DNA of 29,656 bases from Fonticula alba ATCC 38817 (taxonomy: Eukaryota > Protista > Nucleariida), in assembly GCA_000388065.2 (NCBI GenBank), contig KB932304.1, one strand, 5' to 3'. How positions within the stretch are numbered: the stretch's first letter is position 1; every line of letters begins with the position of its first letter. The position numbers and the translations under genes were made by a program. The notes below the pieces were generated by a model. The model saw nothing but the letters and a program-made list of their open reading frames with translations, was not told the origin of the DNA and searched no databases. Positions 1 through 28,378 of this stretch are shown one piece after another.

Positions 1-46
1 GACTCGAACCCATTCACAGGTTTTACCTGCTCTTTCCTAGACCTGA
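1..46 (-). ncRNA. tRNA-like element A (D-armless, no anticodon loop; 3' end cut off by window edge)
   Basis: Minus strand TCAGGTC-TAGGAAAGA-GCAGGT(AAA)ACCTGT-GA-ATGGG-TTCGAGT-C...; homologous to elements at 9337-9395 and 18417-18474. Confidence 0.65.
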
Positions 47-120
47 AAAAAAAAAAAAAATTATTAAATGTTTTTTATTTAATAAATAAAAAATCTATCA
101 GGGATTTTTTTTATGGTATC
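1..120. repeat. ~120-bp dispersed direct repeat, copy 1 (copy 2 at 9349-9467)
   Basis: Near-identical sequence containing the tRNA-like element, a poly-A tract, ttattaaatgtttttt and the hairpin AAAAAATC-tatcagg-GATTTTTT. Confidence 0.95.
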
Positions 121-151
121 TATTAAACAAAGCAGGGAGCTGTTTTGTTTA
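86..151 (-). terminator. Two stem-loops between orf214 and element A (terminator/processing-like)
   Basis: AAAAAATC/GATTTTTT (88-110) and AAACAAAGCAG-ggag-CTGTTTTGTTT (125-150, 11 bp with one G.T). Function is inferred. Confidence 0.45.
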
Positions 152-190
152 GTTTATATTCAGTTGTTTTGGTAGTAGATTTTTTAGTTA

Positions 191-835
191 TTACGTGAGT
201 GATATTGTGTTCATGTATGTTTGTACGATTAGGTCAATGTTTAGGTTGTCATTGATTGCTTGTTTTGCAATGAATGCAGTGTATCTGTTAATATCTACCA
301 TGTTTATAATATTTGAGTGTATAGGATCATTTATTTTGTTAAGTGTTATGTTTAGGTGTTTTGAGCCCTGTTCAAAGAATTCAGCTCTATTGTATTTTAA
401 GCATGCTCTGAGCATTGATATGTCCATCGTTGCATCATACTCTTTTAATATAAGTTTAAAATTATGAGTTCCGTTTTTAATAAGCCTTTCAGCTAGTTCT
501 TTATCTTCTTTTGTCAGTTCAACTTCCCAGCTGGGGTAGCCTAAATAGTTTGTAAGATCCTGACAACTTTTGTTTAAGATATTATCAGGGTTGTTTCCTA
601 ATTCTCCAAATACTGTTGTCTCTTCTAATGTTTTATTGTTTTTTTGAATTATGTGCCTCTGTAACTTCTCATAAATTTTTATCATTTTTTTTTTAGTTGT
701 ATGATCTATCTCTATAGTTTTAGTTGTATGATCTATTTGTATTATTTTAGTAACTTTATGAGCCTGAGTCTCTTCAGTTACTTTATTATAAAGTCCCAAG
801 TATTTAAACATAATATTTAAATAATATTTAATCAT
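191..835 (-). CDS. Orphan hydrophilic ORF, 214 aa (orf214)
   Basis: Long ORF in AT-rich DNA; ATG overlaps the rps4 stop by 8 nt; internal 27-bp tandem repeat (IQIDHTTKT/IEIDHTTKK); no family recognised. Confidence 0.7.
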   Translation of the reverse strand: MIKYYLNIMFKYLGLYNKVTEETQAHKVTKIIQIDHTTKTIEIDHTTKKKMIKIYEKLQRHIIQKNNKTLEETTVFGELGNNPDNILNKSCQDLTNYLGYPSWEVELTKEDKELAERLIKNGTHNFKLILKEYDATMDISMLRACLKYNRAEFFEQGSKHLNITLNKINDPIHSNIINMVDINRYTAFIAKQAINDNLNIDLIVQTYMNTISLT

Positions 836-3644
836 GATTTGGTTTATACGCTCTATTTAGTTCTTCTTTATAAGGAATGATTGTGCTAGGGACCTCCCCA
901 GACAAATCTACACGGTGACCTAACAAAGCCTTGTAATCTTTTTTAAAGTGCGGCATAAGATTGGCTAAACTGTTGATATTTTGTTTTGTTTTGTTTTTAG
1001 GGTTGTTACTTTTATAAATTCTTAAGTTTTTAATAGTTAAATATTTATCTATTTGGGGTTTTTTAAGAATATTCTTATTTTGTTTCTGGCTTAGAATTTT
1101 GTATCTCTTTTTAAGCCTTACTTTTAATTTGCGTCTATGCTGTTTTTTGATTCTTACGCGTAATTTTAATATAGAGTTTAGTATCTTAACAATTCTATAT
1201 TCTTTAGCTTTTAGATATTTGTTGCTAATAGATTCAATGTATCCTTTTTGAAATTCTATGTTTTTAAGTATATTTGGTAAAATAGCTACTTCTTGTTTAT
1301 TTATAGCTAGTTCACAGTAATTTGTTATTGCTGATAGGAATTCAGCTACTATATTAGTAAACCACCCATTAATAATGTATCCTCTAGTACGGAGTAGATG
1401 CCAGTAAATAGATTTATTTACTAATCTACAAGTATTAGTAGGTACACTGAATAATGAAGGCTGGTAAATTCTTCTCATTAATCTTTGTTTAAATTTTCGG
1501 TTATATCTAGGCGCCCATTTATAACGAACAGACTTTAAAGATTCAATAGATAAATATTTTTTAATGTTTGCATATAAATCTCGAAATACTATTTTAGTAG
1601 TAATTCTACGTAATCTATATGAAATTCTTTTTCTTTTGCCTCTTCTTTTATTATATAACAATTTATTAAGTGTAGTCCTAGAACGATGTCTTCGTTTATA
1701 CCTTCTAAACTTAATTCCACTCAATAATCTTCTAGCAGCCCTTAAGCCTGAAGCTCCCGAATTTAATAAATTTAAAAGAGCTGGTAATTTTAATGAATTG
1801 TTATACATACCAATAATATTTTTAGGTTTTAACCTAAAAATTGATTCTGTTAAAATAAACATTTTATTATATACTTCACTATATAATTGATCAGAAACTT
1901 GACCTTTTCTAAATAACTTATATGATGATTTACTTAAATAATTTAATGAAATTATTTGTAGCTTTAAAGCCCATTTAATATTAAACATTATAGCCTTAAT
2001 CATAGCACTATACTTGCTCATAGACACCCTTCTTAATATTCTAGAATACCTACGACCTAATTTTTTAACAACATTTATTAATGATAAGTTAAATACAGTT
2101 TTTGTTGGCATTACATCTAATCCGTAGAATGAGGGCTTATACACCGCAGAAAAATTAGTTAATAAATTAACTTTTCTAAAAAATTTAAAAAATTTATAAT
2201 CCGATACAAAATTATAAACCCAAGGAAGATTAAACTGTAGTATATCCCCAGCACTTAAAACTTCATTTCTAAAGCTTTGCCTATCATTTATATTTAAAAA
2301 TTTTCTATTTACTAATTGTCTACTATGGTATATAGTGTCAGATAAATGCATATTAAACAATTGAGCATCCAACCTATTAATAAACAAATATTTACTAAAT
2401 ATATTGACATATGACCTTTTATACCTAGTTTTAGATATATCCATCTTATAAACCCTATTTAAAAATCTTTTTTCTAAAAACCCATAATAATTCGCAACTC
2501 TATTAGGAAGCTGTAAATATATTTTTCTTTTAACCACTCTATGACGCTTCATATATTTTTTAAATCTTTTTGGTAATGACTTACGCTTCCCTGTAGATTT
2601 CATAAGACGAATTAACCTTCTAATACCATTAACTATTTTTTTTCTTTTTCCTCCAGTAAACCAATAATCTATTTCTCTTTCTGTAAAATATTCATTTAAG
2701 TCAAACTTTAAGTCAATAGTCTGTGGACGTTTAAAATTATTTGTTATTATAACCCAACGTTTTTTAATTACATTAGTAAATTGATTTTTTTTTAAAAAGT
2801 ACATATAATTACTAATAACTGGATTAAAGTGCTTAATCTTATGATATTTAGCACCTAACCTATATAAAACAGACATAGGCTTAGTCAGTTGAGCAAAAAC
2901 TCGGGCACTGTCAATAGTAAAATAAGAATTAATTAAATTTTTTCTAATAGATAATAACCTATTATAAACTGTATAAATATTCGTAAAATTAACTGAATTT
3001 AATCTCTTTAAATATTTATTTTTAAATAACTTATAACGCTTAGCCTTTATAAATCTTCTTAAAAAAAAACTCCTAAAAATTTTTTTATAGCGAGAATAAA
3101 ATACTGGCCTTCTTTTATACTTGTTCAAATAAAAAAAATACAACATCGCCCTAATAGACTTCTTATTTTTTTTTTTAGATCTTATTTTAAAACCAAATAA
3201 AAAATGTTGAAACTCAATAATCAAGTTTTTCACTAACTTCAACAATGAACCATATGAATCAACAGCTTTAGTTCTTAAAAACAAAAAATTTTTATTAACT
3301 GCTGGAACAGACAACTTAGCATCCAAAACTAAAAAACTTTTCAAACCATTCTCTTTATGCAAAGAAAATTTAGGAGGAAGTAAACCAGGATAAAAATATT
3401 TAAGCTTCAAAGAGTTGTGGTGCGGAGCCCTAGAATACTGATAATGATACTTAATACGCCTAGGCTTAAACACCGTAGTATATTCTTTATTACTAACCCT
3501 AAAGTCTTCACTCTTTAACGCATAAATCTTCCTATACAACTCCAGCCTAGAATAAAATGACTTTCTCATAAACTTAGCACGAAACCTCAAATGACGAGGC
3601 ACAAAAGAAGACAACAAAGGACTATTTACAAATGCTGCATTCAT
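828..3644 (-). CDS. rps4: Mitoribosomal protein S4, greatly expanded (938 aa)
   Basis: S4 RNA-binding motif NRLDAQLFNMHLSDTIYHSRQLVNRKFLNIN...LSAGDILQF; C-terminal PHFKKDYKALLG...IIPY resembles the S4 C-terminus; K/R/Y-rich insertions. Confidence 0.85.
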   Translation of the reverse strand: MNAAFVNSPLLSSFVPRHLRFRAKFMRKSFYSRLELYRKIYALKSEDFRVSNKEYTTVFKPRRIKYHYQYSRAPHHNSLKLKYFYPGLLPPKFSLHKENGLKSFLVLDAKLSVPAVNKNFLFLRTKAVDSYGSLLKLVKNLIIEFQHFLFGFKIRSKKKNKKSIRAMLYFFYLNKYKRRPVFYSRYKKIFRSFFLRRFIKAKRYKLFKNKYLKRLNSVNFTNIYTVYNRLLSIRKNLINSYFTIDSARVFAQLTKPMSVLYRLGAKYHKIKHFNPVISNYMYFLKKNQFTNVIKKRWVIITNNFKRPQTIDLKFDLNEYFTEREIDYWFTGGKRKKIVNGIRRLIRLMKSTGKRKSLPKRFKKYMKRHRVVKRKIYLQLPNRVANYYGFLEKRFLNRVYKMDISKTRYKRSYVNIFSKYLFINRLDAQLFNMHLSDTIYHSRQLVNRKFLNINDRQSFRNEVLSAGDILQFNLPWVYNFVSDYKFFKFFRKVNLLTNFSAVYKPSFYGLDVMPTKTVFNLSLINVVKKLGRRYSRILRRVSMSKYSAMIKAIMFNIKWALKLQIISLNYLSKSSYKLFRKGQVSDQLYSEVYNKMFILTESIFRLKPKNIIGMYNNSLKLPALLNLLNSGASGLRAARRLLSGIKFRRYKRRHRSRTTLNKLLYNKRRGKRKRISYRLRRITTKIVFRDLYANIKKYLSIESLKSVRYKWAPRYNRKFKQRLMRRIYQPSLFSVPTNTCRLVNKSIYWHLLRTRGYIINGWFTNIVAEFLSAITNYCELAINKQEVAILPNILKNIEFQKGYIESISNKYLKAKEYRIVKILNSILKLRVRIKKQHRRKLKVRLKKRYKILSQKQNKNILKKPQIDKYLTIKNLRIYKSNNPKNKTKQNINSLANLMPHFKKDYKALLGHRVDLSGEVPSTIIPYKEELNRAYKPNHD

Positions 3645-4472
3645 ATAAAATTAAATAATAGACATAAGATAATTAATAACACAAGCAAACACCAAACAAT
3701 TTAAAAATCACAATTGGCTAACAGTAGCCAATATAACATACAACTATGTAAATAAAAACATACTCGTTATTCATTAACAAGACAACCCATAGTGTTCACC
3801 AACTACCTAAAACATACACAAATTAAGAACCGACCAATAAAAATTTTATATAAATACCTACAAATAAAACAATAAAAACACATAAAAACTCACTAAACAC
3901 CAATAATTATCATATTATAACAGACCCCATACAAATAGTAAACTTATTTACAAAAATAAATGCTAGGAATGAAAACGAATCTGAACATGATAATAAACTA
4001 AAAATAGTACCCATCAAGCTAGAAGAAACAAACACTGGAATAGATAGCCCCCCTAACATATGAAAGGTTTGAACACGTAGAAAACCACCGAATTTAGTTA
4101 GCCACAGAAGATGCAAAAACCCAAGTCTATTACCAAAGTAGTATATAAAACCCACCACATACTTTCAATCAGGGTTAATACATACCTGACCATCTACACT
4201 CATAACATTTAACAGCACTAAACACCAGATAATATAACCATAACAACCACCCTCTCCTAAAAACCAAACCAAAAACCATATAAAAATAAAACAGCCCTAA
4301 TAGACCTACTTACCATAGCCACTAAACATAAAATTAAAAACAGATAATACACCAAACACACACACAAACAGCCAATAAAAAACAACTACAGATATAAAAT
4401 AATAAACAAAGATACAAAATGATAAGACAATAAAACTCACCATAAGACCTAAAGCCAAATCTAATACATCTA

Positions 4473-4529
4473 GGAGTTTAATTGGAATCGAACCAATGAC
4501 CATATGCTCTACCACTGAGCTATAAACTC
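4473..4529 (-). ncRNA. Anticodon-less tRNA-like element (trnK-derived) overlapping the ccmF stop codon
   Basis: GAGTTTA-TA-GCTC(AGTGGTA)GAGC-A-TATG-GTC-ATTGG(TTCGATT)CCAAT-TAAACTC-C; acceptor and D-arm identical to trnK at 13315-13386; anticodon arm replaced by 4 nt. Confidence 0.85.
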
Positions 4530-6221
4530 TTTATTTATATTATTATTATGTTGTTTTTTGATGGTTTTGAATAGTGTTATGATTGTTATGATTGTTATAA
4601 TGTGTGGTGTGTAGTATTGCTTAATGTTTAGGAATTGTTGGTTTTTATTTATGATGAGTTTAATTGTGTGGTCGCTGTGGCCTAATATGCAGTTGTATAT
4701 TCTTGATTTGCTGATGTTTATGTTCTCTGTGTTTCGTATTATTAGTTGTATGTTTTCTGTGTTTTTGTTATTGTAGTATAGTATTTGTGCTATATTGTAA
4801 ATATATGGTTCTTGCTTACATGTTTGTAATTTATATAGGATTAGTTTATAGCCCTCTGATTCTAAACATTGTCCTACTGTTATAGCTATTTCTTCTTCAT
4901 GTTTTATACATAATGCTATTGTGATGTATAGTAAACCTCCTAAAATCATAGCATGGATTATTCTAAAGTTTTTAGATTTTAATAACTTTGATATAATAAT
5001 GGTGCTTACTGATGTATAGACTATATATGAAAGGTTATATGTATAGTATACAGAAATATATAATATTATTATATAAGATATATACTTTATATTATTGATA
5101 GAATTTATTAAAAGGGGTATTATAAGCATTATAAAACATGTAAATATTAATAATGGAAGCAGGACTATACTTTCAAAATCTTCAGGTTCTAACTTAAAAC
5201 CCACCATATTGGGGTGTAATGCATGAACTAAAAATAAAATTAAAGTTATTAGAAACAAAAGAATAGTTACAGAAAACAACAAGGATTTAGCCATTATAGT
5301 ATTAAATGATCTATACTCCATAAATGATACTTGTATTATATAAATTATAAACATTAATAAAACAAATATTAAAAAAATATAATTCTCAGATTCTGAAAAA
5401 CTATGAACGGACTGTAATACACCCGTCCTAACTAATAATAGAGACATTATAGGAGAAATCCAAAATATTATGAATATAATATTTTTTATATTAATAAACT
5501 TATTAAAATTACGATAAAAATATAAAAAATGAAGAATTAATACACTCAATATAAATATAAACATTAATAGGCCCTCTATAGGGTCCCAAGTCCAAGACAA
5601 AGTATTTATATCCCAGCTCCATAAAATACTAAACATCAATGAAGTTCCTAACAAATAAACAATGTGAGATAAAAACCTCTTATGCTCATAAAAAAATCTT
5701 TTTACTGAACTTACTTTTAATAAGCTCAGATAACTTAATGATAATACTAATATATATGAATAAGCAATATATAATATTATTGGATGAAAAATCATCATGG
5801 GGTTTATTAATTGCTGATTTATTTCTTCCGATACAAATTCTAAAGGAAATAAATATAATTCTATTGGTTGTAATATACCTATATATGTGATTATAAATAT
5901 TAATAATATTAATAACTCTTTTTTATAATTAGTAGAATTAATATCATTTAATTCTTGAATTAAATGGGTTCTTACAATAAAAGATATTATTATAATTATA
6001 AAGTATAATAAATAAATACTCTCAAAATTATTAAAAATTAAATTAAAAAACGTAATGATTGAATTATCTTTTTTTAAATCTGTTAACTCATCATGATAGA
6101 AAATTAAATTTATTAATAGGCCTAAAATACTGATGCTGCTTAATGTTTTAATGTTTTGTTTTATAAATAAAGGACTTAAAGTAATTATAGAAAGAGTTAA
6201 TAATTGTAGTGAATAAGTCAT
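4509..6221 (-). CDS. ccmF: Cytochrome c maturation protein CcmF (System I heme lyase), divergent
   Basis: LINPMMIFHPIILYIAY (cf. xQDPxLxIHPPxLYxGY), SWTWDPIE (cf. WFWDPVE), LVRTGVLQSVHSF (cf. LVRSGxLxSVHSF). Confidence 0.9.
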   Translation of the reverse strand: MTYSLQLLTLSIITLSPLFIKQNIKTLSSISILGLLINLIFYHDELTDLKKDNSIITFFNLIFNNFESIYLLYFIIIIISFIVRTHLIQELNDINSTNYKKELLILLIFIITYIGILQPIELYLFPLEFVSEEINQQLINPMMIFHPIILYIAYSYILVLSLSYLSLLKVSSVKRFFYEHKRFLSHIVYLLGTSLMFSILWSWDINTLSWTWDPIEGLLMFIFILSVLILHFLYFYRNFNKFINIKNIIFIIFWISPIMSLLLVRTGVLQSVHSFSESENYIFLIFVLLMFIIYIIQVSFMEYRSFNTIMAKSLLFSVTILLFLITLILFLVHALHPNMVGFKLEPEDFESIVLLPLLIFTCFIMLIIPLLINSINNIKYISYIIILYISVYYTYNLSYIVYTSVSTIIISKLLKSKNFRIIHAMILGGLLYITIALCIKHEEEIAITVGQCLESEGYKLILYKLQTCKQEPYIYNIAQILYYNNKNTENIQLIIRNTENINISKSRIYNCILGHSDHTIKLIINKNQQFLNIKQYYTPHIITIITIITLFKTIKKQHNNNINKEFIAQW

Positions 6222-6281
6222 TCCTTGGAGAAGCCTAGGTAAAATAATGCTCGTATGACCCGTACATAGTATTTATGGTAT

Positions 6282-6878
6282 TTATGTAGTGATTAGGTAT
6301 AGTGTGCCAAGGGCTGTGGCAATTGTTATGTTGTTTAAGATCATGTCTCCGTATGTGCTTGGGATAGAATTATAGAATTCTGATTTAGTTTTTATATTTT
6401 GGTGTATTGAGTTTATATCACCTATTGATATTTTTATAAAATAATAAAGTGTTGTTATTGTGATGATTGTTATAATGTTTAGTTTGTTATTATATGTTAT
6501 TATGTAATAGTAGCATATAATAAGTATTATATCTAATATTTTTTTATCTACTATAAAAAAATTACCCCATATAGCTTGTCCCCATATAATCCCACTTATA
6601 AGTGTTATTATAGAGATATTTAATAGTAGAAAGGAAATATTTTTTATTTTATGTGTAGTTTTAGTGATGTATAGTATACTAATGGGTATAAGGCATATAG
6701 TAACTATAATAGCTAATGGGACATGTACTGAGAACATGATAGTTAAATCACCCTGAGTTAAGTCTATAATAGGTTTTGTTTTAATTCTATTAATAAGAGT
6801 ATAACTTTCGGAGATTATGATTATTAATAGCAGACTTTCTATGAATTTTTTAAACATACTTTTGTTTTTTTCTTTCAT
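6282..6878 (-). CDS. ccmC: Cytochrome c maturation protein CcmC, divergent (start may be the ATG at 6857)
   Basis: [13 protein letters not shown] (cf. QGxxxRIxYxHVP), [16 protein letters not shown] (degenerate WWD motif), SIHQ (cf. TLHQ). Confidence 0.85.
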
Positions 6879-7248
6879 TTAGTAAGACTCTTCTTCCATA
6901 TTTAGATCTCCCTCTTTTTCTAGATAAAACAGGTGCAAGATCAAATTTCCCTCTAACTAGCGTATAATTAACTCCAGGCAGGTCTTTTATTCGGCCCCCC
7001 CTTATAAGAACATAACCATGTTCCTGTAAGTTATGACCAATACCTTTAATAGCTGCTGTAGCATAAAAACCAGTAGTAAATCTAACAGTCGCCACCTTTC
7101 TATTAGCTGAGTTAGGTTTTTTAGGATGTGCTATAAACACAGATGTACAAATACCCTTTCTTTGAGGACATTTATTCAACAATGGGGACTTAGACTCATT
7201 TTTTTTTTTTTTAACCCTAAACTTAACACACTGATTAAACGTTAACAT
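6850..7248 (-). CDS. rps12: Mitoribosomal protein S12
   Basis: [45 protein letters not shown] motifs. Confidence 0.98.
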
Positions 7249-8411
7249 TTAATTCTTTTTCTAAAAGAAAACAGCAATATCATAACATTTTCAAATATAC
7301 CTACTAATGGGTTTATGATTAAGAAATAGCTAAAGTAGAACACAGTCGAGTATACTCCGACTATAGTATATGGTGCTTCCATTGGAGCTCCACCTAAGTA
7401 TCCTAGGATTAAGAAGTTACCTACAAATATCCAGAATAAAAATTTATGTATTGGTCTAAATGTAGCAGATCTTACCCATGCAGTATGTAAGAAAGGTAAT
7501 GCTAATAGTATTAATATAGCCCCTATCATAGCTATTACTCCTCCTAGTTTACTTGGTATAGAACGTAATATAGCATAAAATGGTAAGAAATACCATTCTG
7601 GAACTATATGAGCAGGAGTTACTAATGGGTTTGCTGGGATATAGTTATCAGGGTGTCCCATTACATTAGGATAGAAGAATACGAAGAATGAAAATAATAA
7701 GAAAAATAATATAAATCCATGTATATCTTTTACAGTGAATAAGTCATGTAATCTAGTTTTATCCATATGGGATTCAAATCCCATAGGGTTATTAGATCCA
7801 TGCTTATGAAGTGCTAATATGTGCATTATAACAAGTCCAGCTAATAAGAAAGGAAGTAAATAATGAAGACTAAAAAATCTATTTAATGTAGCATTATCTA
7901 CAGAGAATCCTCCCCATACAAATTGAACAAAATCTTGTCCTATCCAAGGGATAGCTGATAACATGTTTGTTATAACTGTAGCAGCCCAGAAACTCATTTG
8001 TCCCCAAGGTAATACATATCCTAAAAAGGCTGTACCCATCATTATTAGGAAGATTATAACTCCAATAGACCAAACAAACACTCTTGGTTTAGTATAAGAA
8101 CCAAAATATAATCCACGAGCTATATGAACATAAACAAACATAAAAAAGAATGATGCACCATTAGCATGAGAGTATCTAATTAACCAACCTAAATTAACAT
8201 CCCTCATAATATGCTCAACACTAATAAAAGCCAGATCTACATGAGGAGTATAATGCATAGCCAATACAACCCCTGATGCTATCTGAATAACTAAGCAAAT
8301 ACCTAAAATAGAACCAAAATTCCAGAAATAAGAAATATTAGCCGGAAGAGAAGATTCAACCAATGCCGAACTCAAATGAGACAAGCCACTTAATCTTTTA
8401 CTAAGCTTCAT
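7242..8411 (-). CDS. cob: Apocytochrome b
   Basis: [47 protein letters not shown] motifs. Confidence 0.99.
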
Positions 8412-9183
8412 CTAACATATTATTAACCCAAGAAATATAGTTATCCATTTTTACAGATTCCACAACGATAGGCATAAACCCATGTTGAACTCCACATATT
8501 TCACTACATTGTCCAAAGAATACTCCTTCTCTGTTAATAATCATAGAAGTTTGGTTTAGTCTTCCTGGAATCGCATCTAACTTAATTCCTAAACTTGGAA
8601 CAGCCCATGAATGAATAACATCTGAAGATGTTATTATTAATCTAACATGAGTGTCCATAGGAACAACCATTCTATTATCTACTTCAAGTAATCTAAATTG
8701 ACCTAATTCTAAATCTGATGTTGGTAGCATATAACTATCAAACTCTATAGACCAAGCATGATCTGAATACTCATATGACCAATACCATTGATGACCCACC
8801 ACTTTAATTGTAACAGCCGGATCAATAACCTCATCCATTAAATATAACAATCTAAATGAAGGAAAAGCTATCGAAATCAAAATAAACGCCGGAGTCACAG
8901 TCCAAATAATCTCAATTAATGTACCATGTCTAATATACTTATGAGAAAAAAACTCATCTTTAAACTCAAATATAATAACAGATAATATCCATGTAACAAA
9001 AACAGTTGTAACAATTAGATAAAAAAATATATGATCATGCAATGATATTATACCTTGCATAACAGGTGTAGCAGGATCTTGAAAACCATACTGTAAAGGA
9101 TACGCTATATCTAAATTCATCATTTTATAAATTTTTATATTTTTACGTAGGATACAAATTAATAGTAAGACATTGTATATCAT
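8401..9183 (-). CDS. cox2: Cytochrome c oxidase subunit 2
   Basis: [36 protein letters not shown] (CuA ligands). Confidence 0.99.
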
Positions 9184-9336
9184 CTTTATAAAAATAGTAG
9201 CTAATTAGGCATAACCTAATTATGCTGCATAGCTACCCAGAAATAAAAAATTATTATTAATCTCTAAAACTCTTAAGACTCAACTTTTTCTTTTTTCTTT
9301 CTGTTCTCTCTAAGCTTCTGTACTTATTTTAAATGC

Positions 9337-9395
9337 GCCAGGCAAGGGGATTCGAACCCATTCGCAGGTAAAAACCTGCTCTTTCCTAGACCTGG
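9337..9395 (-). ncRNA. tRNA-like element B (59 nt, D-armless, tetraloop hairpin instead of an anticodon arm)
   Basis: CCAGGTC-TAGGAAAGA-GCAGGT(TTTT)ACCTGC-GA-ATGGG(TTCGAAT)CCCCT-TGCCTGG-C; acceptor CCAGGT/GCCTGG pairs; canonical T-loop. Confidence 0.75.
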
Positions 9396-9467
9396 ATAAA
9401 AAAAAAATTATTAAATGTTTTTTATTTAATAAATAAAAAATCTATCAGGGATTTTTTTTATGGTATC
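9349..9467. repeat. ~120-bp dispersed direct repeat, copy 2 (copy 1 at 1-120)
   Basis: Direct sequence comparison. Confidence 0.95.
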
Positions 9468-9498
9468 GTCTTTGTTTATATTTAATATTTGTTATTGT

Positions 9499-9702
9499 GC
9501 TGTATTAGATTTTTTTTTTTATTTTATCTCCTATCACTGAGCATTGTAATATTAGACCATTTGTTTCCTAGTGTTTTTTATTTTATTATTTGGGTTTAAA
9601 GCTGTATTAGATTTTTTTTTTTATTTTATCTCCTATCACTGAGCATTGTAATATTAGACCATTTGTTTCCTAGTGTTTTTTATTTTATTATTTGGGTTTA
9701 AA
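9499..9702. repeat. Perfect 102-bp tandem duplication (2 units)
   Basis: 9499-9600 and 9601-9702 are identical (gctgtattaga-T11-attttatctcc...tgggtttaaa). Confidence 0.95.
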
Positions 9703-10553
9703 CTCTGCTAGCTATTGAAAATGCTAGTGGATTTTAAATTGATTTTATGGTCTTTTTATAGTTTACTTTCAGGGAAATTTTATGGCTATGTTTACCTTTA
9801 TTGTAAAGTTATCATAGTTCTTCATTCTTCTTGTTAATTGAGAAGGTTTTTTTAACAGTAATTTTAAGCACTTTTAACATTCTGTTAAATATTTTCCTGG
9901 GTTAGTAGCTATTTATTTGAGATTATAATTCTTCTACTTTCATGCTTAGGATTGGTAAGTTTCTGGCTTTATCTAGTATGTGCTATAACTAATAAATTAG
10001 AGATAATTTATTATTATATAGGTTCTATTCTCTATTAATTTTTATTTTATATCTGCAGGAGATTATAATCAGTCTCTTTCTATAACTAACTACATAGATA
10101 TTAATTTTCAAGTACTTTATACAGTATTTTTTATAGGCCCTCTAATAAGATACTAACATTAATATCCTGAGTTAATAAGTTTTATTTTAGATAAAACTTA
10201 GGTTAAATTTATATTGCAGATATTTATAGAAATTTAGAGGGCTAATACATCTTGAAACTAATTATTAGTGATACCCAAATCTGGTTCATACTAGAACGGC
10301 ATGATCAAGTGTTGGCCGAGAATAGACGATTATTCCGTAACTTTATGTAAAATTATCAGGGTTTTATAACCTAGTAGATAATTAAGTTATATACAATTAA
10401 TATTAATGTTAGTATCTTATTAGAGGGCCTAATTTATCTAAAATCTTAGGGTAAAATACTTGTATTTAGCCCTACTGTAAAATACTATGGAAATATTATA
10501 GCAAAATTAATATTAATTTGGCCAAAGGCTGTTAACTTAATTATTTTGTGTTT

Positions 10554-12784
<2,231 letters not shown>

Positions 12785-12817
12785 TTATGATTTGTTTATA
12801 GTATATTGGTTGTTTAT

Positions 12818-12890
12818 GGCGGACTATAGGATTCGAACCCATGACCAACAGAATCACAATCTGGTGCTCTACCAACTGAGCTAAGCCCGC
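12818..12890 (-). tRNA. trnH: tRNA-His(GUG)
   Basis: Cloverleaf; acceptor GCGGGCT/AGTCCGC; loop TTGTGAT; C73; the -1 base is T, not G. Confidence 0.95.
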
Positions 12891-12901
12891 ATAATTTTAG
12901 T

Positions 12902-12973
12902 TTGAGAAAATGGGATTCGAACCCATGCGTCATGAAATCAAAATCCATTGCCTTACCACTTGGCTATTCCTCA
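12902..12973 (-). tRNA. trnQ: tRNA-Gln(UUG)
   Basis: Cloverleaf; acceptor TGAGGAA/TTTCTCA; loop TTTTGAT. Confidence 0.95.
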
Positions 12974-13229
12974 ATGGAGTTTCCTCCTTATATTTTGTTA
13001 ATATTAGTTCTTAAATTTAGTTAATTTTTATTAGAATTAGATAAAACTTCTCTAACTAATGATACTTTTTCCATATTAACACAATATGAATATATCATGT
13101 TATAACTAATTGTAAAAAATACACAAAACATAAAAGAAAGATTAAAAAAAGTTAATAAATCTACTTGTGGCATAAAATATAATATATAATGGCTATATTA
13201 TCTGGAAGATTATTAATATATTATCTATT

Positions 13230-13312
13230 TGAGGGCGATGGGATTCGAACCCATGCTCACATTCGTGGATAGATTTACAGTCTATTGCTTTAAACCGCTC
13301 AGCCACACCCTC
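13230..13312 (-). tRNA. trnY: tRNA-Tyr(GUA)
   Basis: Cloverleaf with long variable arm; loop CTGTAAA. Confidence 0.95.
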
Positions 13313-13314
13313 AA

Positions 13315-13386
13315 TGAGTTTAACAGGACTCGAACCTGCGACCAACGGATTAAAAGTCCGCTGCTCTACCACTGAGCTATAAACTC
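13315..13386 (-). tRNA. trnK: tRNA-Lys(UUU)
   Basis: Cloverleaf; acceptor GAGTTTA/TAAACTC; loop CTTTTAA. Confidence 0.96.
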
Positions 13387-13506
13387 TTATTTATAAAGTT
13401 AAATAACCCCCATTCAGTCTAATTTATTTTACTATTCCTTTACGATCTAGTGTCGAACAGATTTAAGCTTCTAATATAATAGCATTTATTTAGGCTATAA
13501 CGTAGG

Positions 13507-13555
13507 AATTTCCTAATCCTGAAGAGATTGTCGTATCTTGCCCTGTTAGGAAATT
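13507..13555. promoter_or_regulatory. Inverted repeat in the divergent trnK/trnL spacer (candidate bidirectional promoter or origin)
   Basis: AATTTCCTAA (13507-13516) / TTAGGAAATT (13546-13555), with inner GAGAT/ATCTT pairing; lies between head-to-head genes. Confidence 0.4.
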
Positions 13556-13582
13556 ATTAGTTATGTTGTTATTCAAAAAATA

Positions 13583-13667
13583 GCCCGCTTGGTGGAACTG
13601 GCAGACACGACAGACTTAAAATCTGTTTTCAGTTTATGAAGTATTGGTTCGAGTCCAATAGTGGGTA
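13583..13667 (+). tRNA. trnL: tRNA-Leu(UAA)
   Basis: Cloverleaf with long variable arm; loop CTTAAAA. Confidence 0.95.
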
Positions 13668-13669
13668 TT

Positions 13670-13741
13670 GGGCTTATAGTTTAGTGGTAAAACGTTCCAC
13701 TCATGATGGATACTACGTGGGTTCGATTCCTACTAAGCCCA
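13670..13741 (+). tRNA. trnI: tRNA with CAU anticodon, probably tRNA-Ile(CAU, lysidine type)
   Basis: GGGCTTA/TAAGCCC acceptor and GTTT/AAAC D-stem resemble organellar trnI(CAU); loop CTCATGA. Identity is inferred. Confidence 0.8.
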
Positions 13742-14061
13742 ATGCTCCCGATCTTTTGATCGTAGCATACCACTATGATAGTTTATGGATGTATCTTTCG
13801 CACACACACATGCTCAGATATTACCTATCTCTTAATATTGCTTTTAGGCCACACAATATAATTTATATTTCATTTTTTTAAATGAGATTTGTTTTTTAAG
13901 TATTTATATTATAGTTTGTTTTAATTATAAAATTTTTTTTTATGAAAAATATTTTATTTGTGTATGTTCCAGCTAGTGAGACACTAGTGTGGGTTGTTAG
14001 TGATTAATTCAGTTGTGGATCAAAATTTAGATTTAGTTATTTTACTATTAGATTTATATTT

Positions 14062-14940
14062 ATGTATAATAGGTTAGATTTAATGGAGTTAAAAGCCTTA
14101 TATGAAAACATGATAGCCCCGATTTTATCTATTATTTTATTTATAGTTAAATTTTTGATGTATATAATTGGAATAATTTATATATCTAAAATACAACCAG
14201 TTTATATATCTGAAGTTTCATCGGACTATAATAATAAGTATTATTATTATGTTATTATTGTGATTTTTATTTTGGTTGTATATGGTTTGATAAAGATTTT
14301 GGGGTATTTTAAACCAGGTCTTTTTAGTATGAGGGGGTTTGTTTTTCCTTCTGCTTATTTGGGGGCTTATAATCTGATTATTTTTTTAGCTGGTAGGTTT
14401 TTCTCTAGGTTTTTTATTAGGTTGCTGTCTTCTTTGGTTTGGGGTCATGGTCTGACGGGTTATTATGCTTTTAGGGTAATTTTGGCTTTGTTTCCTTTTG
14501 TTTTTTTGGTTTGTTTTTTTAATTTTATTAATTTTGGGGGTTCGTTGGGTTATTTGTCAGTATTAGTGCCTGTGGGGTTTGTTATTTGGATTTTTAAATG
14601 TTTTTTATATTCATTTAAAAAGTTTGTTTTAACTAACTTGGAAATGATGTCTGACTTGTTGTTTGTTTATGTGTTGGGCTCATCTCCAGAGGAGGAAGTT
14701 GCTCTTATTGACATTGAGAAGTTGAATTTTAAATTGACTTCTCTTGCTTTTACCTTAGAGTTTAGAGAGGAGGACATTCCTCAGCTAAAACAAAAGTGGC
14801 TTTTGTTTGCTAGTGGAAAGTGTTCTATTTCTTTATATGACAATTATTTTAGGTTGGTTGGCTATGTTGCTATAGCCCTTAAAATCTTGGCTTGGGCGAA
14901 TATTTGTATTATTATGATGGATATGGGGGATGTTTCGTAG
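14062..14940 (+). CDS. Orphan multi-TM membrane protein, family A copy A1 (292 aa)
   Basis: Several hydrophobic spans; shares YIIxxIY and PxxFxxWxxK/RxxxxSFxxFV with orf275, orf208 and orf137, and KLTxxA with orf275. Confidence 0.8.
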   Translation: MYNRLDLMELKALYENMIAPILSIILFIVKFLMYIIGIIYISKIQPVYISEVSSDYNNKYYYYVIIVIFILVVYGLIKILGYFKPGLFSMRGFVFPSAYLGAYNLIIFLAGRFFSRFFIRLLSSLVWGHGLTGYYAFRVILALFPFVFLVCFFNFINFGGSLGYLSVLVPVGFVIWIFKCFLYSFKKFVLTNLEMMSDLLFVYVLGSSPEEEVALIDIEKLNFKLTSLAFTLEFREEDIPQLKQKWLLFASGKCSISLYDNYFRLVGYVAIALKILAWANICIIMMDMGDVS

Positions 14941-15346
14941 GTTTAGTTCTAATATTTTTAATGTAAGTTCCCCAAGAATGTATTATCATGCTGTAAAATT
15001 AGATTGGGATAAGATACCCAAGTATAAAAGTCAGCTTTCTGATCTGGGGGTATGCCCAAAGCATCTTTTAATAGTGGACGAGAATAGGACAGATGAGAAT
15101 GGTACTGTGCCTCTTATTAGTCAGGCAACTAGTAAGCCAGGTTATAGTTACGAGTCATTCTTATTAGACGAGAATAAAAATATTATTGGGGAAAACAAGC
15201 CCCAGCACCTGTTAAGATTTCAACAAAATAAAATTAGGCTTGATACGCAAGATTATAAATATATTAATAACAGTGAAGAATATTTAAATAGCCATAAAGA
15301 AAGTATAGATAACAATTTAAATATCGTTACAGATAATTCTGAGTAA
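14930..15346 (+). CDS. Orphan soluble protein, family B copy B1 (138 aa)
   Basis: Overlaps the A1 stop by 11 nt; HLLIVDE...ISQATS...SFLL...NIIGENKPQHLL aligns with orf202. Confidence 0.75.
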   Translation: MFRRFSSNIFNVSSPRMYYHAVKLDWDKIPKYKSQLSDLGVCPKHLLIVDENRTDENGTVPLISQATSKPGYSYESFLLDENKNIIGENKPQHLLRFQQNKIRLDTQDYKYINNSEEYLNSHKESIDNNLNIVTDNSE

Positions 15347-15359
15347 ATAACTATAAGGG

Positions 15360-15413
15360 ATAATCCCCAAGGGGATTATTCACAAACATAAAAACAAATA
15401 TTATATTTGTTTT
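15360..15413 (+). terminator. Two stem-loops between B1 and the chimeric tRNA
   Basis: ATAATCCC-caag-GGGATTAT (15360-15379) and AAAACAAATA-tta-TATTTGTTTT (15391-15413). Confidence 0.5.
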
Positions 15414-15414
15414 A

Positions 15415-15488
15415 GAGAATGTAGCTCAACTGGATAGAGCGATAGCCCTCTTAGCTATAGGTCATGGGTTCGAGTCCCATCATTCTCG
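15415..15488 (+). tRNA. Chimeric tRNA-like gene: Arg(UCU) D/anticodon arms on an Asp acceptor/T-arm, with aberrant anticodon loop
   Basis: GAGAATG-TA-GCTC(AACTGGATA)GAGC-G-ATAGC(CCTCTTA)GCTAT-AGGTC-ATGGG(TTCGAGT)CCCAT-CATTCTC-G; compare trnR 26369-26442 and trnD 26128-26201; has C33 and U37. Confidence 0.8.
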
Positions 15489-16203
15489 TTTTTATATATT
15501 TTATAGTTCTTTTATGTATATTATAAATTGCGTTGTATTTTTAATTGTTATATTAACAGTTAGTACATTTATGTTTTAAAACTAATTATTTAGTAGATGT
15601 TTAGGTGGTCTTTTATGATCTTTAATGCTATTTAATTCGTGTTTTGTTTTTTATTTTATGTTATTTCTTATATTTTAATTTTAGCTATTTTTAGGTGTGT
15701 ATTTTGATTATATAATTATTTGGGTTTTTTTTATATAAGGGGGTGTGTACAAGAGTATAAATCTATTAGCTGTATGTTTACTATAGAAGATATCATACAT
15801 TTATAAAAACTAATGGTATTTAATTAAATGATAGTTTTTATGGTTGTTTTGTCTGTTGATGTACTTTTCTTAAGTTTGTTTTTATGGTTTATGTTGTTAT
15901 ATTACTATCTGTTCTTTTGTTGAATCTGAATTTGTAGGGGGTTTATTATCTTGTTGGGTTTAATTGTCATAGTTCGTTGATTTAGTTTGTTATTTGCTGA
16001 GTTTGTTATCTGATAGCTTTTGTTTTGTTCAAGTATATTTTTCTATCTATGTCTTTGTACGTAGAGGTTACTTAGTTGGTTTTGCTCTATGGTTATGTTA
16101 TTAGTTGGTTGTTATTCTTTTAGTGACTGTAACAATTGTTATAGTATAAATAAAAATTTTATATAAGTTTTATTTAAAAAGTTAAGGGGTATACTATACT
16201 ATA

Positions 16204-16263
16204 TTATTTTATTTGTAGATTTTCTTTTAAATTAAAGAATTCTATAACAAGTTTCTTTCTCAT
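16204..16263 (-). pseudogene. Remnant 5' end of a family B gene (psi-B4)
   Basis: ATG 8 nt after the reconstructed A2 stop; MRKKLVIEFFNLK aligns with the orf202 start MKGDLIKHVFNLR; stop after 19 codons. Confidence 0.55.
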
Positions 16264-16271
16264 TTTGTTTT

Positions 16272-17016
16272 TTAAAGAATTATAATTAAGGAAATAAAGC
16301 TGAATGCTAATATTCTTGTATATATAATTATATCCTGATATTTTAATAAAGTGTCTCTAGGTTTAATACTGTAAAGAGCTAGTGCTTGTTCAACTAATTG
16401 GGGGGGTATGAGTTGAATTTAGGCCGCTTTCAATCGCCGATTTAGTTAGCCCTACAATTATTTCCTTAGTAATTTGATCCTTTGCTACACGCTCGAGCTC
16501 TTGTTCATCATACACTAGTAATTCTTTTAAAGCTTTTATTTTGCTTTCTATAAAATTTTCAAAAGATATTCTTACCATCCTAATAATCCAAATAGACAAA
16601 TTAAAAGGTACTATTAATATTACATATTGTGAAGATATTAAACCTAAAAAGAATAATATTAATGCTATTAGGTTTATAATAGGTTGGGTTATATCTGTAA
16701 TAATTTTCAGTATACTTAATAGGCTAGAGCTGCTTCGGCTTAATCTTACATGCATTATAAATTTATTGTAATATTCCAGCCTATAGTAATTTCCTATTAG
16801 ATGAAATAATACTTCAATAGCATTCCTTGATGTAATTGGTAATCCTTCAGTACCGAGTTTAAACTTTACTCGTAAATATTTTACGTATATAAAATATCCT
16901 ATTAAAATAATAAGTACAAAGATGTATTTCCATTTAGAATAAACAGGTAAGTCTCCTACCATTTTAGCAGTATGAAATGGTAGATATATTAATTGTATAA
17001 TATAAATAAATATCAC
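16272..17016 (-). pseudogene. Family A copy A2 (orf208 plus frameshifted C-terminus, ~247 aa if repaired)
   Basis: Gap-free paralog of orf275; GTG start only. An extra C in the C7 run (G7 at 16400-16406) shifts the frame; the continuation QLVEQALALYSIK...IYTRILAF matches orf275 DLVEKLLMLYKFK...FYARVFMW. Confidence 0.85.
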
Positions 17017-18416
17017 AACTACACAACATATTTAAATATAATATAATACCCCCCATTATTAACCCCTTATATATAATATTCAAGAACTCCCCTATAACAT
17101 AGGTATAAAGTAGGTACATTACTAATACATAATAAATACTAGATTTATACTAACCAAGATATTTTTACTTAAGCAGGACAGATGCATAAAACATGCACAT
17201 AATATTTAATATACGCACAAACCAACAAAACAGCCCTATAACAAACCCCACCTCAATTAATTTAAACTAAGCTACAATAATATAAAAGGAAGAATCAACT
17301 AGAACCCATAATATATACTTACTTTATAACTTACACTAGTATATTTATAAGAGACACCTAAAACACTATAAGTTATAAGTTTTATACTAAAATATAATAT
17401 ATTAACAGCATAGAAATATACTCGTATATATTATGGGCAGATTACCTGCAGAACAAATATCTAAATAAAAATAGACAGGCATAAATTAAGCTATAGATTA
17501 CAGTGAAGATGCCTATCACATAATATATACTACCAGAAATGTTTACACCTATTAATTTATAACACATAAACCCCCCCCACTAAACCAGTGTTATAGGCAC
17601 CTATCCTAATACCATATTCATAAAATACTAAAATTAGTATATTTCACCAGAGGATTCTAACTCACACAAATCATTTCTTTTACCGATAAAAGCCAGATTT
17701 AATATTCATATTTTCAAGAAAGGTTTAAGGTATTTACAGTAATGCTATATTATATACACTCAAATTAAATCACTTGAGTTTATATAAACCTAAATATATT
17801 TAACTATACTGGAAAATACATACACTATAATCTGAATTTCATAAGCCAGTAGTTCTAACAGTAACAGAGCTTAGTTAAGATTATAAAGTACTTTAGATTA
17901 CCCTCAGCCAACAAACCTTTATAGAGATGTAACCATACAGCTACTAACTTCTAACCTTTAGAAGTTATTGCCATACTCACCCTGGTAGAACACCAGCTTG
18001 TCACCAATACTAGGAATTATATAAAATAACCACTTGTTCTTCGTTACAAGCCCAACCGTATTTTAATACATAATATAACCTAATAATAGGTATATTATAA
18101 ATAAACTCAATATACTACTAACAGAATAAAACAACAAGAAATATAGACACAAAGCCAAAAACAACACTAAAACTACCATAATAGCCAATAAACATTATTA
18201 TATTAGGCCCAATACAACACTAAACTTATAATACCCCCTATTAATTAAATAAACACTAAAGCATTACTAAACTACTACTGATTTAACACTAAAACTTATA
18301 AATTAAAACAACCAAAACAAGACAATATAAAACATTCTAATATTTATTTTTTTAATCATAAACAAAGCCGACCCAAGAGGAGCCTAACCCATAAGCATAT
18401 ATCCCATTATAAAGCG

Positions 18417-18474
18417 ATCAGAGAATAGGATTCGAACCCATTCGTAGGTATTTACCTACTCTTCCAGACCCTGT
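18417..18474 (-). ncRNA. tRNA-like element C (58 nt)
   Basis: ACAGGGT-CTGGAAGA-GTAGGT(AAAT)ACCTAC-GA-ATGGG(TTCGAAT)CCTAT-TCTCTGA; compensatory changes relative to elements A and B. Confidence 0.7.
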
Positions 18475-18488
18475 AAAAACTTTATAAA

Positions 18489-18520
18489 TAAAGAAACCCC
18501 ATTTTCAATAGGGTTTTTTA
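18489..18520 (-). terminator. Stem-loop between orf202 and element C
   Basis: AAACCC (18494-18499) / GGGTTT (18511-18516), extended by A/T flanks. Confidence 0.4.
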
Positions 18521-26108: not shown

Positions 26109-26127
26109 AACAAAAAATATATAAAAA

Positions 26128-26201
26128 CGAGAATGATGGGACTCGAACCCACGACCTTTAACGTGACAAGCTAATACTCTACCAGACTAAGTTACATCCT
26201 C
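26128..26201 (-). tRNA. trnD: tRNA-Asp(GUC)
   Basis: Acceptor GAGGATG/CATTCTC; loop TTGTCAC; G73. Confidence 0.95.
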
Positions 26202-26368: not shown

Positions 26369-26442
26369 CACACTCTACAGGACTCGAACCTGTGACCTAT
26401 AACTTAGAAGGCTATTGCTCTATCCAGTTGAGCTAAGAGTGT
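26369..26442 (-). tRNA. trnR: tRNA-Arg(UCU), canonical copy
   Basis: Acceptor ACACTCT/AGAGTGT; loop CTTCTAA. Confidence 0.95.
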
Positions 26443-27413: not shown

Positions 27414-28378
27414 AACTAATAAAAAAAAAACAAGAAAATGTCCAAAAATAAAACGTTATTCAATAAAAAAACACCAACAAACAAACCAAAAAACTCTTAG
27501 AACATACACGCACAAAACAAAATAATCACAACCATTACACTGGAAGAACCAAATCTAAACGTTAAATTATAATATCAAGAACATACAAAACAAGCACAAA
27601 ACAACTACATAAAAACTGTTATATATCCATATAAATTATATACATAAGATAAATTATACGAACCTAACCCATAAGCACATGCTTAACCATAAACCACTCA
27701 GGCAATAGAATACTTCCACAATACACAACATTAAGAGTATTCAGTGTAATATAATACCCACTCGTACAGTAAACACTACCAGAGTATAGGAGAGTATCTA
27801 AACAAGATGTCAGAGAGAAAGAAAAAAACAATTACTTGAGACAACAAAATAAAACCACAAGAAAACAGATGGAGTACCCACAAGTAACTTCGGCACAGAA
27901 GCGGACAACGTTTAACCACCAATGAGCAGAGGTGAATATTGGAAAACATATGTAAATTCTATAACAATTTACCAATAAGCTGTTTAGATACAGCAACCTA
28001 CTAGAATTGGGCAAAGCGTTATAAACATCACTCAGACCAGTAAAATAGGGGAAGTAACACAATACCCAGATACCCAATGGAAAGGAAAATAGAGAACGAT
28101 GGGAATCAATGAAGTAAACCCGGCAAACAGAACACCTCTCACAAATGGGTGAGGAACATCAACAAAATAATAAAAAATTATTAAATGTTTTTCTTGTTTT
28201 TGCATTTGTTTTTGTTCTTTGTCCGGAAAATTTTTGTTCTAATTGAGTAAGGTTTGTTTAGTGTGCTTTGTTATTATATAGTTATTCTTTAGAGATTTAA
28301 CTAGTATTAGAAGTATATCTGAAATCAGATAGTTATTATTTTAACTCCTATGGTTTTAATTTATCTCTATCACTCTTG

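Follow-up and report, generated by a model that had tools for sequence, protein, structure and literature searches.

Gene order and the positions of elements A, B, and C

The stretch of DNA analyzed here (the window) comprises bases 1–29656 of KB932304.1, a 45,189-nt contig of assembly GCA_000388065.2 that represents mitochondrial DNA (mtDNA) of Fonticula alba. Its mitochondrial gene content includes cox1, cox2, cob, cox3, atp9, rps12, the large ribosomal RNA, and 20 tRNAs. On the minus strand lie three short elements, herein called A (1–49), B (9337–9395), and C (18417–18474), which are derived from tRNAs as judged by their sequences and which may act as RNA-processing marks similar to the t-elements of plant mitochondria. 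The search for further copies covered positions 1–32710 of KB932304.1, of which a cox3 walk gave 11904–32710.

Read along the minus strand, the gene order begins with the tRNAs Lys-Tyr-Gln-His and continues with cox1-orf203, 1.1 kb of repeats, an AT-rich leader, element B, cox2-cob-rps12-orf198-orf570, a shortened tRNA-Lys copy (mini-Lys), orf938-orf214, the leader again, and element A. A second minus-strand block comprises cox3, orf275-orf202, a hairpin, and then element C. Real tRNAs bound the other blocks of the window, with His-Gln before cox1, Met-Asn between rnl and cox3, and Val before atp9. The three elements have the same sense as their flanking genes and are located at block junctions that carry no real tRNA.

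The sequence-only reading that preceded this work had placed each element downstream of an orphan open reading frame (ORF) and just after a terminator-like hairpin. The first of these statements is accurate for A and C, which follow the stop codons of orf214 and orf202 by 142 and 134 nt, respectively, whereas B lies 1158 nt after the stop codon of orf203. When rearranged versions of the locus present in Logan contigs (see below) are included, the spacing from stop codon to element is 134–168 nt in four contexts (A, C, L006, and L007/L010), and in each of these four a hairpin with an A-run, a stem, and a U-run is located 5′ of the element, its shape being kept while its sequence varies. The second statement applies to C, whose upstream hairpin passes a scan for terminator-like structures, whereas the hairpins upstream of A and B are AU-only palindromes. 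The structure that passes, which was also recognized by its fold, is a stem-loop of the form AAACCC...GGGGTTT with a T-rich tail (18494–18516, minus strand) about 20 nt 5′ of C, and it is a candidate for the hairpin that protects the 3′ end of the orf275-orf202 RNA.

Anatomy of the tRNA-like elements

Elements B and C are complete, with lengths of 59 and 58 nt, and are scored at 87.9 and 81.1 bits by a covariance model (R1) constructed from the three copies. Element A scores 50.7 bits and is truncated within its T-loop because KB932304.1 begins at that base. Thus, the earlier description of three stretches with one layout is correct in its positions, all on the minus strand, and is incomplete in that only B and C present the whole layout.

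The plan common to B and C includes an acceptor-like stem of 5 to 6 bp, a GG-containing linker, a 6-bp hairpin, the dinucleotide GA, and a canonical T-arm. In element B, which is located 153–213 nt upstream of cox2, the acceptor-like stem is CCAGGT/GCCTGG (6 bp, with one extra base on the 3′ acceptor strand), the linker is CTAGGAAAGA, the hairpin is GCAGGT-TTTT-ACCTGC with a 4-nt loop, and the T-arm that follows GA is ATGGG-TTCGAAT-CCCCT, which includes one T × C mismatch. Element C carries the 5-bp stem CAGGG/CTCTG, the hairpin GTAGGT-AAAT-ACCTAC, and a T-arm without mismatch. The exact T-arm motif that typifies t-elements, GGTTCGAATCC, is present on the minus strand at 9348–9358 and 18428–18438, and element A carries GGTTCGAGTC as far as the start of the contig. 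This T-loop motif is also the commonest dispersed repeat, with 31 matches versus 2.5 expected.

For element B, the minimum free energy (MFE) fold corresponds to the proposed structure (z = −1.9 to −2.3). The exact 58-nt construct of element C adopts the proposed fold with a short 4-bp acceptor stem and a low ensemble frequency of 0.08, and the z-scores for C are −1.4 to −2.2. When RNAalifold was applied to B and C together and without constraints, the acceptor-like stem and the hairpin were both recovered.

These structures depart from canonical tRNAs in two respects. The linkers, (C)TAGGAAAGA and CTGGAAGA, lack a stem partner and hence form no D-stem, and the hairpin loops comprise 3 to 4 nt rather than the 7 nt of an anticodon loop. 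Because the loops differ between copies, there is no conserved anticodon, and because a D-stem and a 7-nt anticodon loop are both absent, the elements cannot decode. None of the three was called by Rfam model RF00005 at its gathering threshold or by ARAGORN. In E-value mode, the best Rfam tRNA match for C was tRNA-Sec (15.5 bits, E = 1.4) and there was no tRNA match for B, while ARAGORN produced no calls at a relaxed threshold and only off-register, low-value calls in its metazoan-mitochondrial mode.

The tRNA origin proposed above is indicated by several features. The linker keeps the GG and AGAGC of a D-loop and the 3′ strand of a D-stem, local alignments of the elements extend along whole tRNAs (for example, Phe and Gln), the T-arm of C equals that of tRNA-His at 17 of 17 positions, and the T-arm of B equals that of the Gln and Tyr tRNAs at 16 of 17. 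The acceptor 3′ strands of B and C (TGCCTGG and TCTCTGA) have no counterpart among the tRNAs of the window, which argues against the prior suggestion of an integration scar in its strict sense, namely a copy of the 3′ end of a resident tRNA. The linker and the hairpin are likewise unmatched by tRNAs in the window.

Conservation and covariation

The cores of B and C are 76% identical, a value that was reached by none of 300 shuffles, while each 60-nt bin of their flanks is no more alike than shuffled sequence. The element is the only conserved island between flanks that otherwise cannot be aligned. In the three-row alignment, 95% of the cells designated as paired are indeed paired, versus 33–51% when the partners are slid, and exactly two pairs are compensatory, one changing from C-G to U-A in the hairpin and the other from U.G to G-C in the acceptor stem. 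A hand count of the stem differences between B and C revealed five that keep or gain pairing (including two double changes) and one that breaks a pair, a result that is suggestive but was obtained post hoc.

Element B is unchanged in six Logan contigs (L006, L007, L010, L011, L013, and L014), and C is unchanged in one (L016). A scan of metagenomes with the pattern AGGT-N4-5-CCTRY-GAATGGGTTCGA yielded a single match (L003), a chance occurrence within a GC-rich bacterial ORF, and the same pattern had no match in the viral collection. A search for homologues of orf202 recovered only the orf202 protein itself, and therefore there are no relatives with which to anchor C. The nearest cox2 relative (P0003 from ERR1762251, 87% identity) is carried by a 1.2-kb contig that includes 56 nt upstream of the gene and so ends short of the position of B.

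Repeated leaders, additional copies, and rearranged cassettes

Elements A and B both sit in one longer repeat, and therefore A is not independent of B. The AT-rich leader upstream of A (51–120, minus strand), which includes an A-run/hairpin/U-run palindrome, is 100% identical over its 70 nt to the leader directly 5′ of B (9398–9467, minus strand), while the elements themselves differ at about eight positions. The hairpin of A (17–32) is the reverse complement of the hairpin of B (9364–9379) less one base, with AAAA in place of TTTTT, such that several of the A/B differences amount to one event. This relationship between the two sequences indicates a small hairpin-mediated inversion at the DNA level. 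The hairpin loop of C is in the A orientation.

A third and partial leader copy (28164–28192, minus strand) is 93% identical to positions 47–75 and has no element after it. DNA run X6 has a loose end at 9422 that connects to this copy.

The search with R1 was of the kind that the sequence-only reading had advised, and in contig positions 1–32710 it detected A, B, and C and no further copy, the next best match being tRNA-Gln at 27 bits. The three behave as a dispersed repeat family whose copies are detectable by their own model. The elements are real, though the case for them is weaker than the earlier reading held. Repeat alignment additionally revealed a decayed fourth copy at approximately 27660–27760 (minus strand) that R1 does not match. 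This copy resembles 18380–18431 at 71% in its 3′ acceptor strand and the flank downstream, and its T-loop and hairpin are unrecognizable.

The leader-B-cox2 module is found with three upstream partners, namely orf203 with tandem repeats, orf214, and a cassette that encodes a membrane protein and a soluble protein. In two other samples (Logan contigs L007 and L010), the sequence flanking orf214 continues unbroken through the 70-nt leader into B and cox2, and not into A. Compared with the reference contig (window 1–638 and 6569–9467), this arrangement represents either another gene order or an isoform produced by recombination. Because orf214 joins B in these contigs, the support for A as a locus of its own comes from the first 49 bases of a single contig.

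The third partner is present in L006 (1–620, SRR35359252), wherein a membrane ORF of at least 149 aa and a soluble ORF of 132 aa are followed by a hairpin, a leader whose 3′ 42 nt are kept, B, and cox2. The same ORF149-ORF132 cassette occurs in L018 (1–979, SRR17204937), which ends just past the hairpin, where the shared leader begins. The cassette is absent from contig positions 1–32710, and its hairpin, AAAAATTCCT-ATTT-AGGAATTTTT, has the shape of the reference hairpin and another sequence. The homology breaks between the various arrangements are located in the leader or the hairpin, and Logan contigs break at the leader repeat.

Several other irregularities were noted near B. Just upstream of its leader are two tandem 102-nt repeats (9472–9675) that are 87% identical, and RNA and DNA contigs from X16, X17, and X6 contain one such repeat fewer, with a joint that skips 102 nt. 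L014 matches 9574–9775 at just 95.6%. The spacer between orf203 and B carries a perfect 32-nt inverted repeat (10134–10165 and 10400–10431, 234 nt apart) at which assemblies break. The cox2-bearing contigs L008, L009, and L012, which derive from three SRR353592xx runs, all start at 9353 inside the T-loop of B. This common start is not the point at which A and B diverge, and it could reflect a variant, an assembly branch, or a real end.

RNA contigs at elements B and C

The RNA data consist of assembled contigs, and run X16 is labeled 'RNA?' in the run list. A 53x contig from this run (record 8) spans positions 10163 down to 9398 and stops there, and overlapping X16 contigs extend the coverage through orf203 and cox1 to 12795. 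Position 9398 is the end of a U-run and lies 2 to 3 nt before the first acceptor base of B, which is the predicted RNase P site. No sampled words of 9184–9397 were found in RNA runs X15–X17. Note that 9398 is also the last base common to the A and B copies and that it abuts a 1-nt indel variant at 9397 observed in DNA run X6. The end of the X16 contig fits a 3′ end made at the module and is ambiguous with an assembly branch.

Other products of tRNA recombination and the orphan ORFs

A 57-nt sequence on the minus strand (4473–4529) is a copy of tRNA-Lys from which exactly the 15-nt anticodon arm is missing, as established by alignment to tRNA-Lys, by its fold, and by an Rfam tRNA score of 51.1 bits. 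This mini-Lys overlaps the stop codon of the 570-aa ORF, for which there is no Pfam match, and its acceptor and D-arm are 100% identical to those of tRNA-Lys (13315–13386). It is a second kind of anticodon-less tRNA-like element that, like the first, is located at the 3′ end of a gene block. We considered and rejected its T-stem (ATTGG/CCAAT) as an instance of independent covariation, because tRNA-Leu(taa) has the same T-stem and chimerism explains it equally well.

The gene called tRNA-Arg(tct) at 15415–15488 (plus strand) is a chimera. As determined by repeat comparison with 26114–26160 and 26380–26435, it is 89% like tRNA-Arg(tct) (26369–26442) in its 5′ part and 96% like tRNA-Asp in its 3′ part and 3′ flank. 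This chimeric tRNA closes the plus-strand orf292-orf138 cassette. In addition, a second tRNA-Gln/tRNA-His pair is present at about 32.4 kb (L015:195–356, contig positions ~32355–32516), upstream of an 893-aa ORF (29643–32324).

Among ten ORFs examined with Pfam, including orf938 and orf214, the sole match was a weak one to Cytochrom_C_asm in orf198. A retroplasmid or plasmid origin was considered and is unsupported, since this analysis of ten ORFs gave no polymerase, reverse transcriptase, or recombinase. When orf214, orf203, orf202, orf138, and orf185 were aligned, identities of 16–26% were obtained, which do not establish secure homology. The reading frame of orf938 (828–3644, minus strand) shares 8 nt with that of orf214, and its product, which Pfam does not match, is extremely basic and rich in K, R, N, Y, and F. 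The cob ORF has 479 to at least 619 aa in L008, L011, and L012 compared with 389 aa in the window, which points to inserted sequence, an intron ORF, or a variant with read-through.

A proposed role in RNA processing and its rivals

With about even confidence, we favor the proposal that A, B, and C are tRNA-derived t-elements that end the 3′ module of orphan cassettes and direct cleavage by the ribonucleases (RNases) P and Z. The module is composed of an A-run/hairpin/U-run stem-loop, a short AT-rich leader, and the element in last position, and it comes after the second ORF, a soluble one, of rapidly evolving orphan two-gene cassettes within long minus-strand transcription units. Cleavage by mitochondrial RNase P at the 5′ edge and by RNase Z at the 3′ edge of the element would free the upstream cassette RNA and allow its 3′ end to be trimmed to, and shielded by, the stem-loop. 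The same cleavage would also create the 5′ end of the downstream RNA, which in the case of B would be that of cox2. The family would have expanded via duplication and recombination of the cassette plus its module, with the module acting as the recombination junction. The anatomy, the relations among the copies, the recombinant arrangements, and the failure of the elements to qualify as tRNAs or tmRNAs are observed in the sequence, whereas transcription through the elements, their cleavage, and any selective value they may have are inferred.

This proposal is supported by the presence of a 5- to 6-bp acceptor stem beside a 5-bp T-stem, which fits a minimal substrate for RNase P and RNase Z, and by the fact that the elements, together with mini-Lys, occupy block junctions that lack tRNA punctuation, in the sense of the genes. 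It also draws on the conservation of the B and C cores between unalike flanks, on stem differences that mostly keep pairing, on the constant spacing behind a hairpin of preserved shape, and on the end of the X16 contig. Processing marks were among the functions named by the sequence-only reading, and they offer the best fit to the acceptor/T-arm half (the part used by RNase P and RNase Z), the motif, the orientation, and the placement, whereas the RNA end at 9398 remains ambiguous.

Several observations weigh against the proposal. The end of the X16 contig can be explained by a branch in the de Bruijn graph because the A/B divergence and the 9397 indel are located there, and element C is covered by no RNA contig. 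Complete copies number only two, and one further copy has decayed, so not every copy is maintained. The fold z-scores are modest overall (−1.4 to −2.3), and in a longer construct the MFE calculation prefers a different fold for C. The two compensatory pairs are real, yet the claim that they demonstrate selection on structure was overstated, since the covariation among three sequences is equaled by 76 of 500 column shuffles and is not significant. Furthermore, the T-arms equal those of resident tRNAs, and therefore gene conversion could mimic conservation.

The main rival explanation is that the elements are neutral debris, that is, internally deleted or chimeric tRNA pseudogenes generated by illegitimate or microhomology recombination and carried along with duplicated cassettes and short dispersed repeats, their apparent conservation being due to youth or to gene conversion with real tRNAs. 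We view this as possible though rather doubtful. This mtDNA is rich in tRNA recombination products (the chimeric Arg/Asp tRNA, mini-Lys, and the duplicated Gln/His pair), the T-loop motif is an abundant repeat, the T-arms of B and C match resident tRNAs, and a decaying copy, a hairpin inversion at the DNA level, and nonsignificant covariation also count in its favor. However, debris does not readily account for acceptor strands, a linker, and a hairpin that are unlike the tRNAs of the window and yet are conserved between B and C amid randomized flanks, nor for stem differences that mostly keep pairing, nor for the regular placement, strand, and spacing of the elements behind ORFs. An alternative that retains a function but assigns it to the DNA is that the leader plus the element is a recombination site for orphan cassettes, loosely attachment-like, in which the RNA structure is incidental. 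The existence of three upstream partners joined to one leader-B-cox2 module, with homology breaks in the leader or hairpin and Logan contigs that break at the repeat, is in accord with this idea, and a role as a recombination junction is established in the weak sense that recombinant arrangements exist. A dedicated site is nevertheless unnecessary because any mtDNA repeat of 70–120 nt recombines, and there was no sign of a recombinase, a target duplication, or an empty site. The idea also leaves unexplained why C, with flanks that have nothing in common with those of B, has kept the shape of a tRNA, and we judge it improbable.

Two further possibilities would make the elements functional RNAs of other kinds. 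The topology, comprising an acceptor stem, an unpaired D-loop analogue, one helix, and a T-arm, recalls the tRNA-like domain of transfer-messenger RNA (tmRNA), and the elements might accordingly be a small RNA for ribosome rescue, either a reduced, tmRNA-like one of mitochondria or one that is aminoacylated in another way. The sequence-only reading had noted this resemblance and also the absence of the alanine G3.U70 pair, and the latter point is correct, as both B and C have A-U at pair 3-70 (alignment columns 6/59). ARAGORN (-m, 80% threshold) detected no tmRNA, and in Rfam E-value mode RF00023 gave 6 bits to B from the T-loop alone and C had no match to tmRNA or mitochondrial tmRNA at E <= 10. 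Given, in addition, that several copies have unlike acceptor stems and no tag reading frame, we consider a tmRNA-like function very improbable, each of the features tested having gone against it. Even more remote is the prospect that the elements are decoding tRNAs in extremely reduced form, or that they supply the 3′ halves of class II tRNAs that are split or permuted. The 6-bp hairpin that immediately precedes the T-arm does resemble a long variable arm, and several tRNA species are absent from the window. Against this, each element is closed by a 5′ strand of its own, the window yielded no 5′ half complementary to it, and the loops have 3 to 4 nt (5 to 6 nt at most with the closing pair open), with that of B being the complement of that of A.

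The processing-mark proposal could be extended to a portable cassette-end module, consisting of stem-loop, leader, and t-element as paralogous anticodon-less tRNA mimics, that sets RNA ends via RNase P and RNase Z and also mediates the duplication and swapping of orphan two-gene cassettes between sites and strains. We offer this broader version as a speculation that is unlikely to be correct in full. If true, it would constitute an organellar integron-like cassette system based on tRNA mimicry and independent of plant t-elements. Should RNA mapping confirm cleavage, the elements would represent t-element punctuation of independent origin outside plants, in a sister group of fungi, and would show a mitochondrion recruiting broken tRNA genes for the expression of orphan genes that have newly arisen or been duplicated. 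If they are merely debris, they are ordinary dispersed tRNA fragments in a recombinogenic mtDNA. For annotation, it matters that A, B, C, mini-Lys, and the chimeric Arg/Asp tRNA of this mtDNA all look like tRNAs without being tRNAs. Because of these objects and of the strain-specific arrangements around the module, the reference gene order and tRNA counts should not be taken at face value.

Comparison with known systems

A literature search recovered no study of the Fonticula mitochondrial genome and none of such elements beyond plants and green algae. In plant mitochondria, t-elements are noncanonical tRNA-like folds that were found via the motif GGTTCRANYCC, whose borders coincide with mRNA ends, and that are cut by RNase P and RNase Z; cases include wheat, Arabidopsis cox1, ccmC, nad6, rps4, and ccmFN1, and Brassica orf138 (Forner et al. 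2007, PMC1920247). Their gain in a streptophyte ancestor has been hypothesized (PMC8003010). The Fonticula elements are similar in having a noncanonical tRNA-like fold with this T-arm motif, in adjoining or overlapping the ends of protein genes in polycistronic units near stem-loops, with some after chimeric or orphan ORFs as with orf138, and in the action proposed for them, in which RNase P cuts the 5′ border and RNase Z the 3′ border. They differ in that RNA ends, a released small RNA, and nontemplated C or CCA additions have been mapped in plants, whereas the Fonticula elements are known from sequence. They also belong to a lineage of Holomycota, and they constitute a small set of paralogs that share one fixed layout (without a D-stem and with a mini anticodon-arm hairpin) and are tied to a repeated leader and duplicated cassettes.

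The arrangement also resembles the animal mtDNA model in which tRNAs punctuate mitochondrial transcripts. Real tRNAs bound other blocks in the window and the elements fill the tRNA-less junctions, although these punctuating units, unlike those of animals, cannot act as tRNAs. Among metazoan mitochondrial tRNAs, D-armless forms such as tRNA-Ser(AGY) keep a 7-nt anticodon loop and decode. The Fonticula elements share with them an unpaired linker in place of the D-arm and a length below 60 nt, and differ from them in their loops of 3 to 4 nt and in the lack of a conserved triplet. With the tRNA-like domain of tmRNA and the reduced mitochondrial tmRNA of jakobids they have in common an acceptor stem, a T-arm, and a stemless D-loop analogue, whereas the G3.U70 pair and any covariance-model match are absent and the elements are multicopy with variable acceptor stems.

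In the MALAT1 transcript, a downstream tRNA-like fold (mascRNA) directs the RNase P cut that makes the 3′ end of the upstream RNA, and an adjacent structure protects that end. A tRNA-like 3′ module beside a protecting structure is likewise what we propose for Fonticula, although the mascRNA/MALAT1 system is nuclear, vertebrate, and unrelated in sequence, and its mechanism has been demonstrated experimentally. Of all these systems, t-elements are already known from plant mitochondria, and the Fonticula set would add another lineage to them.

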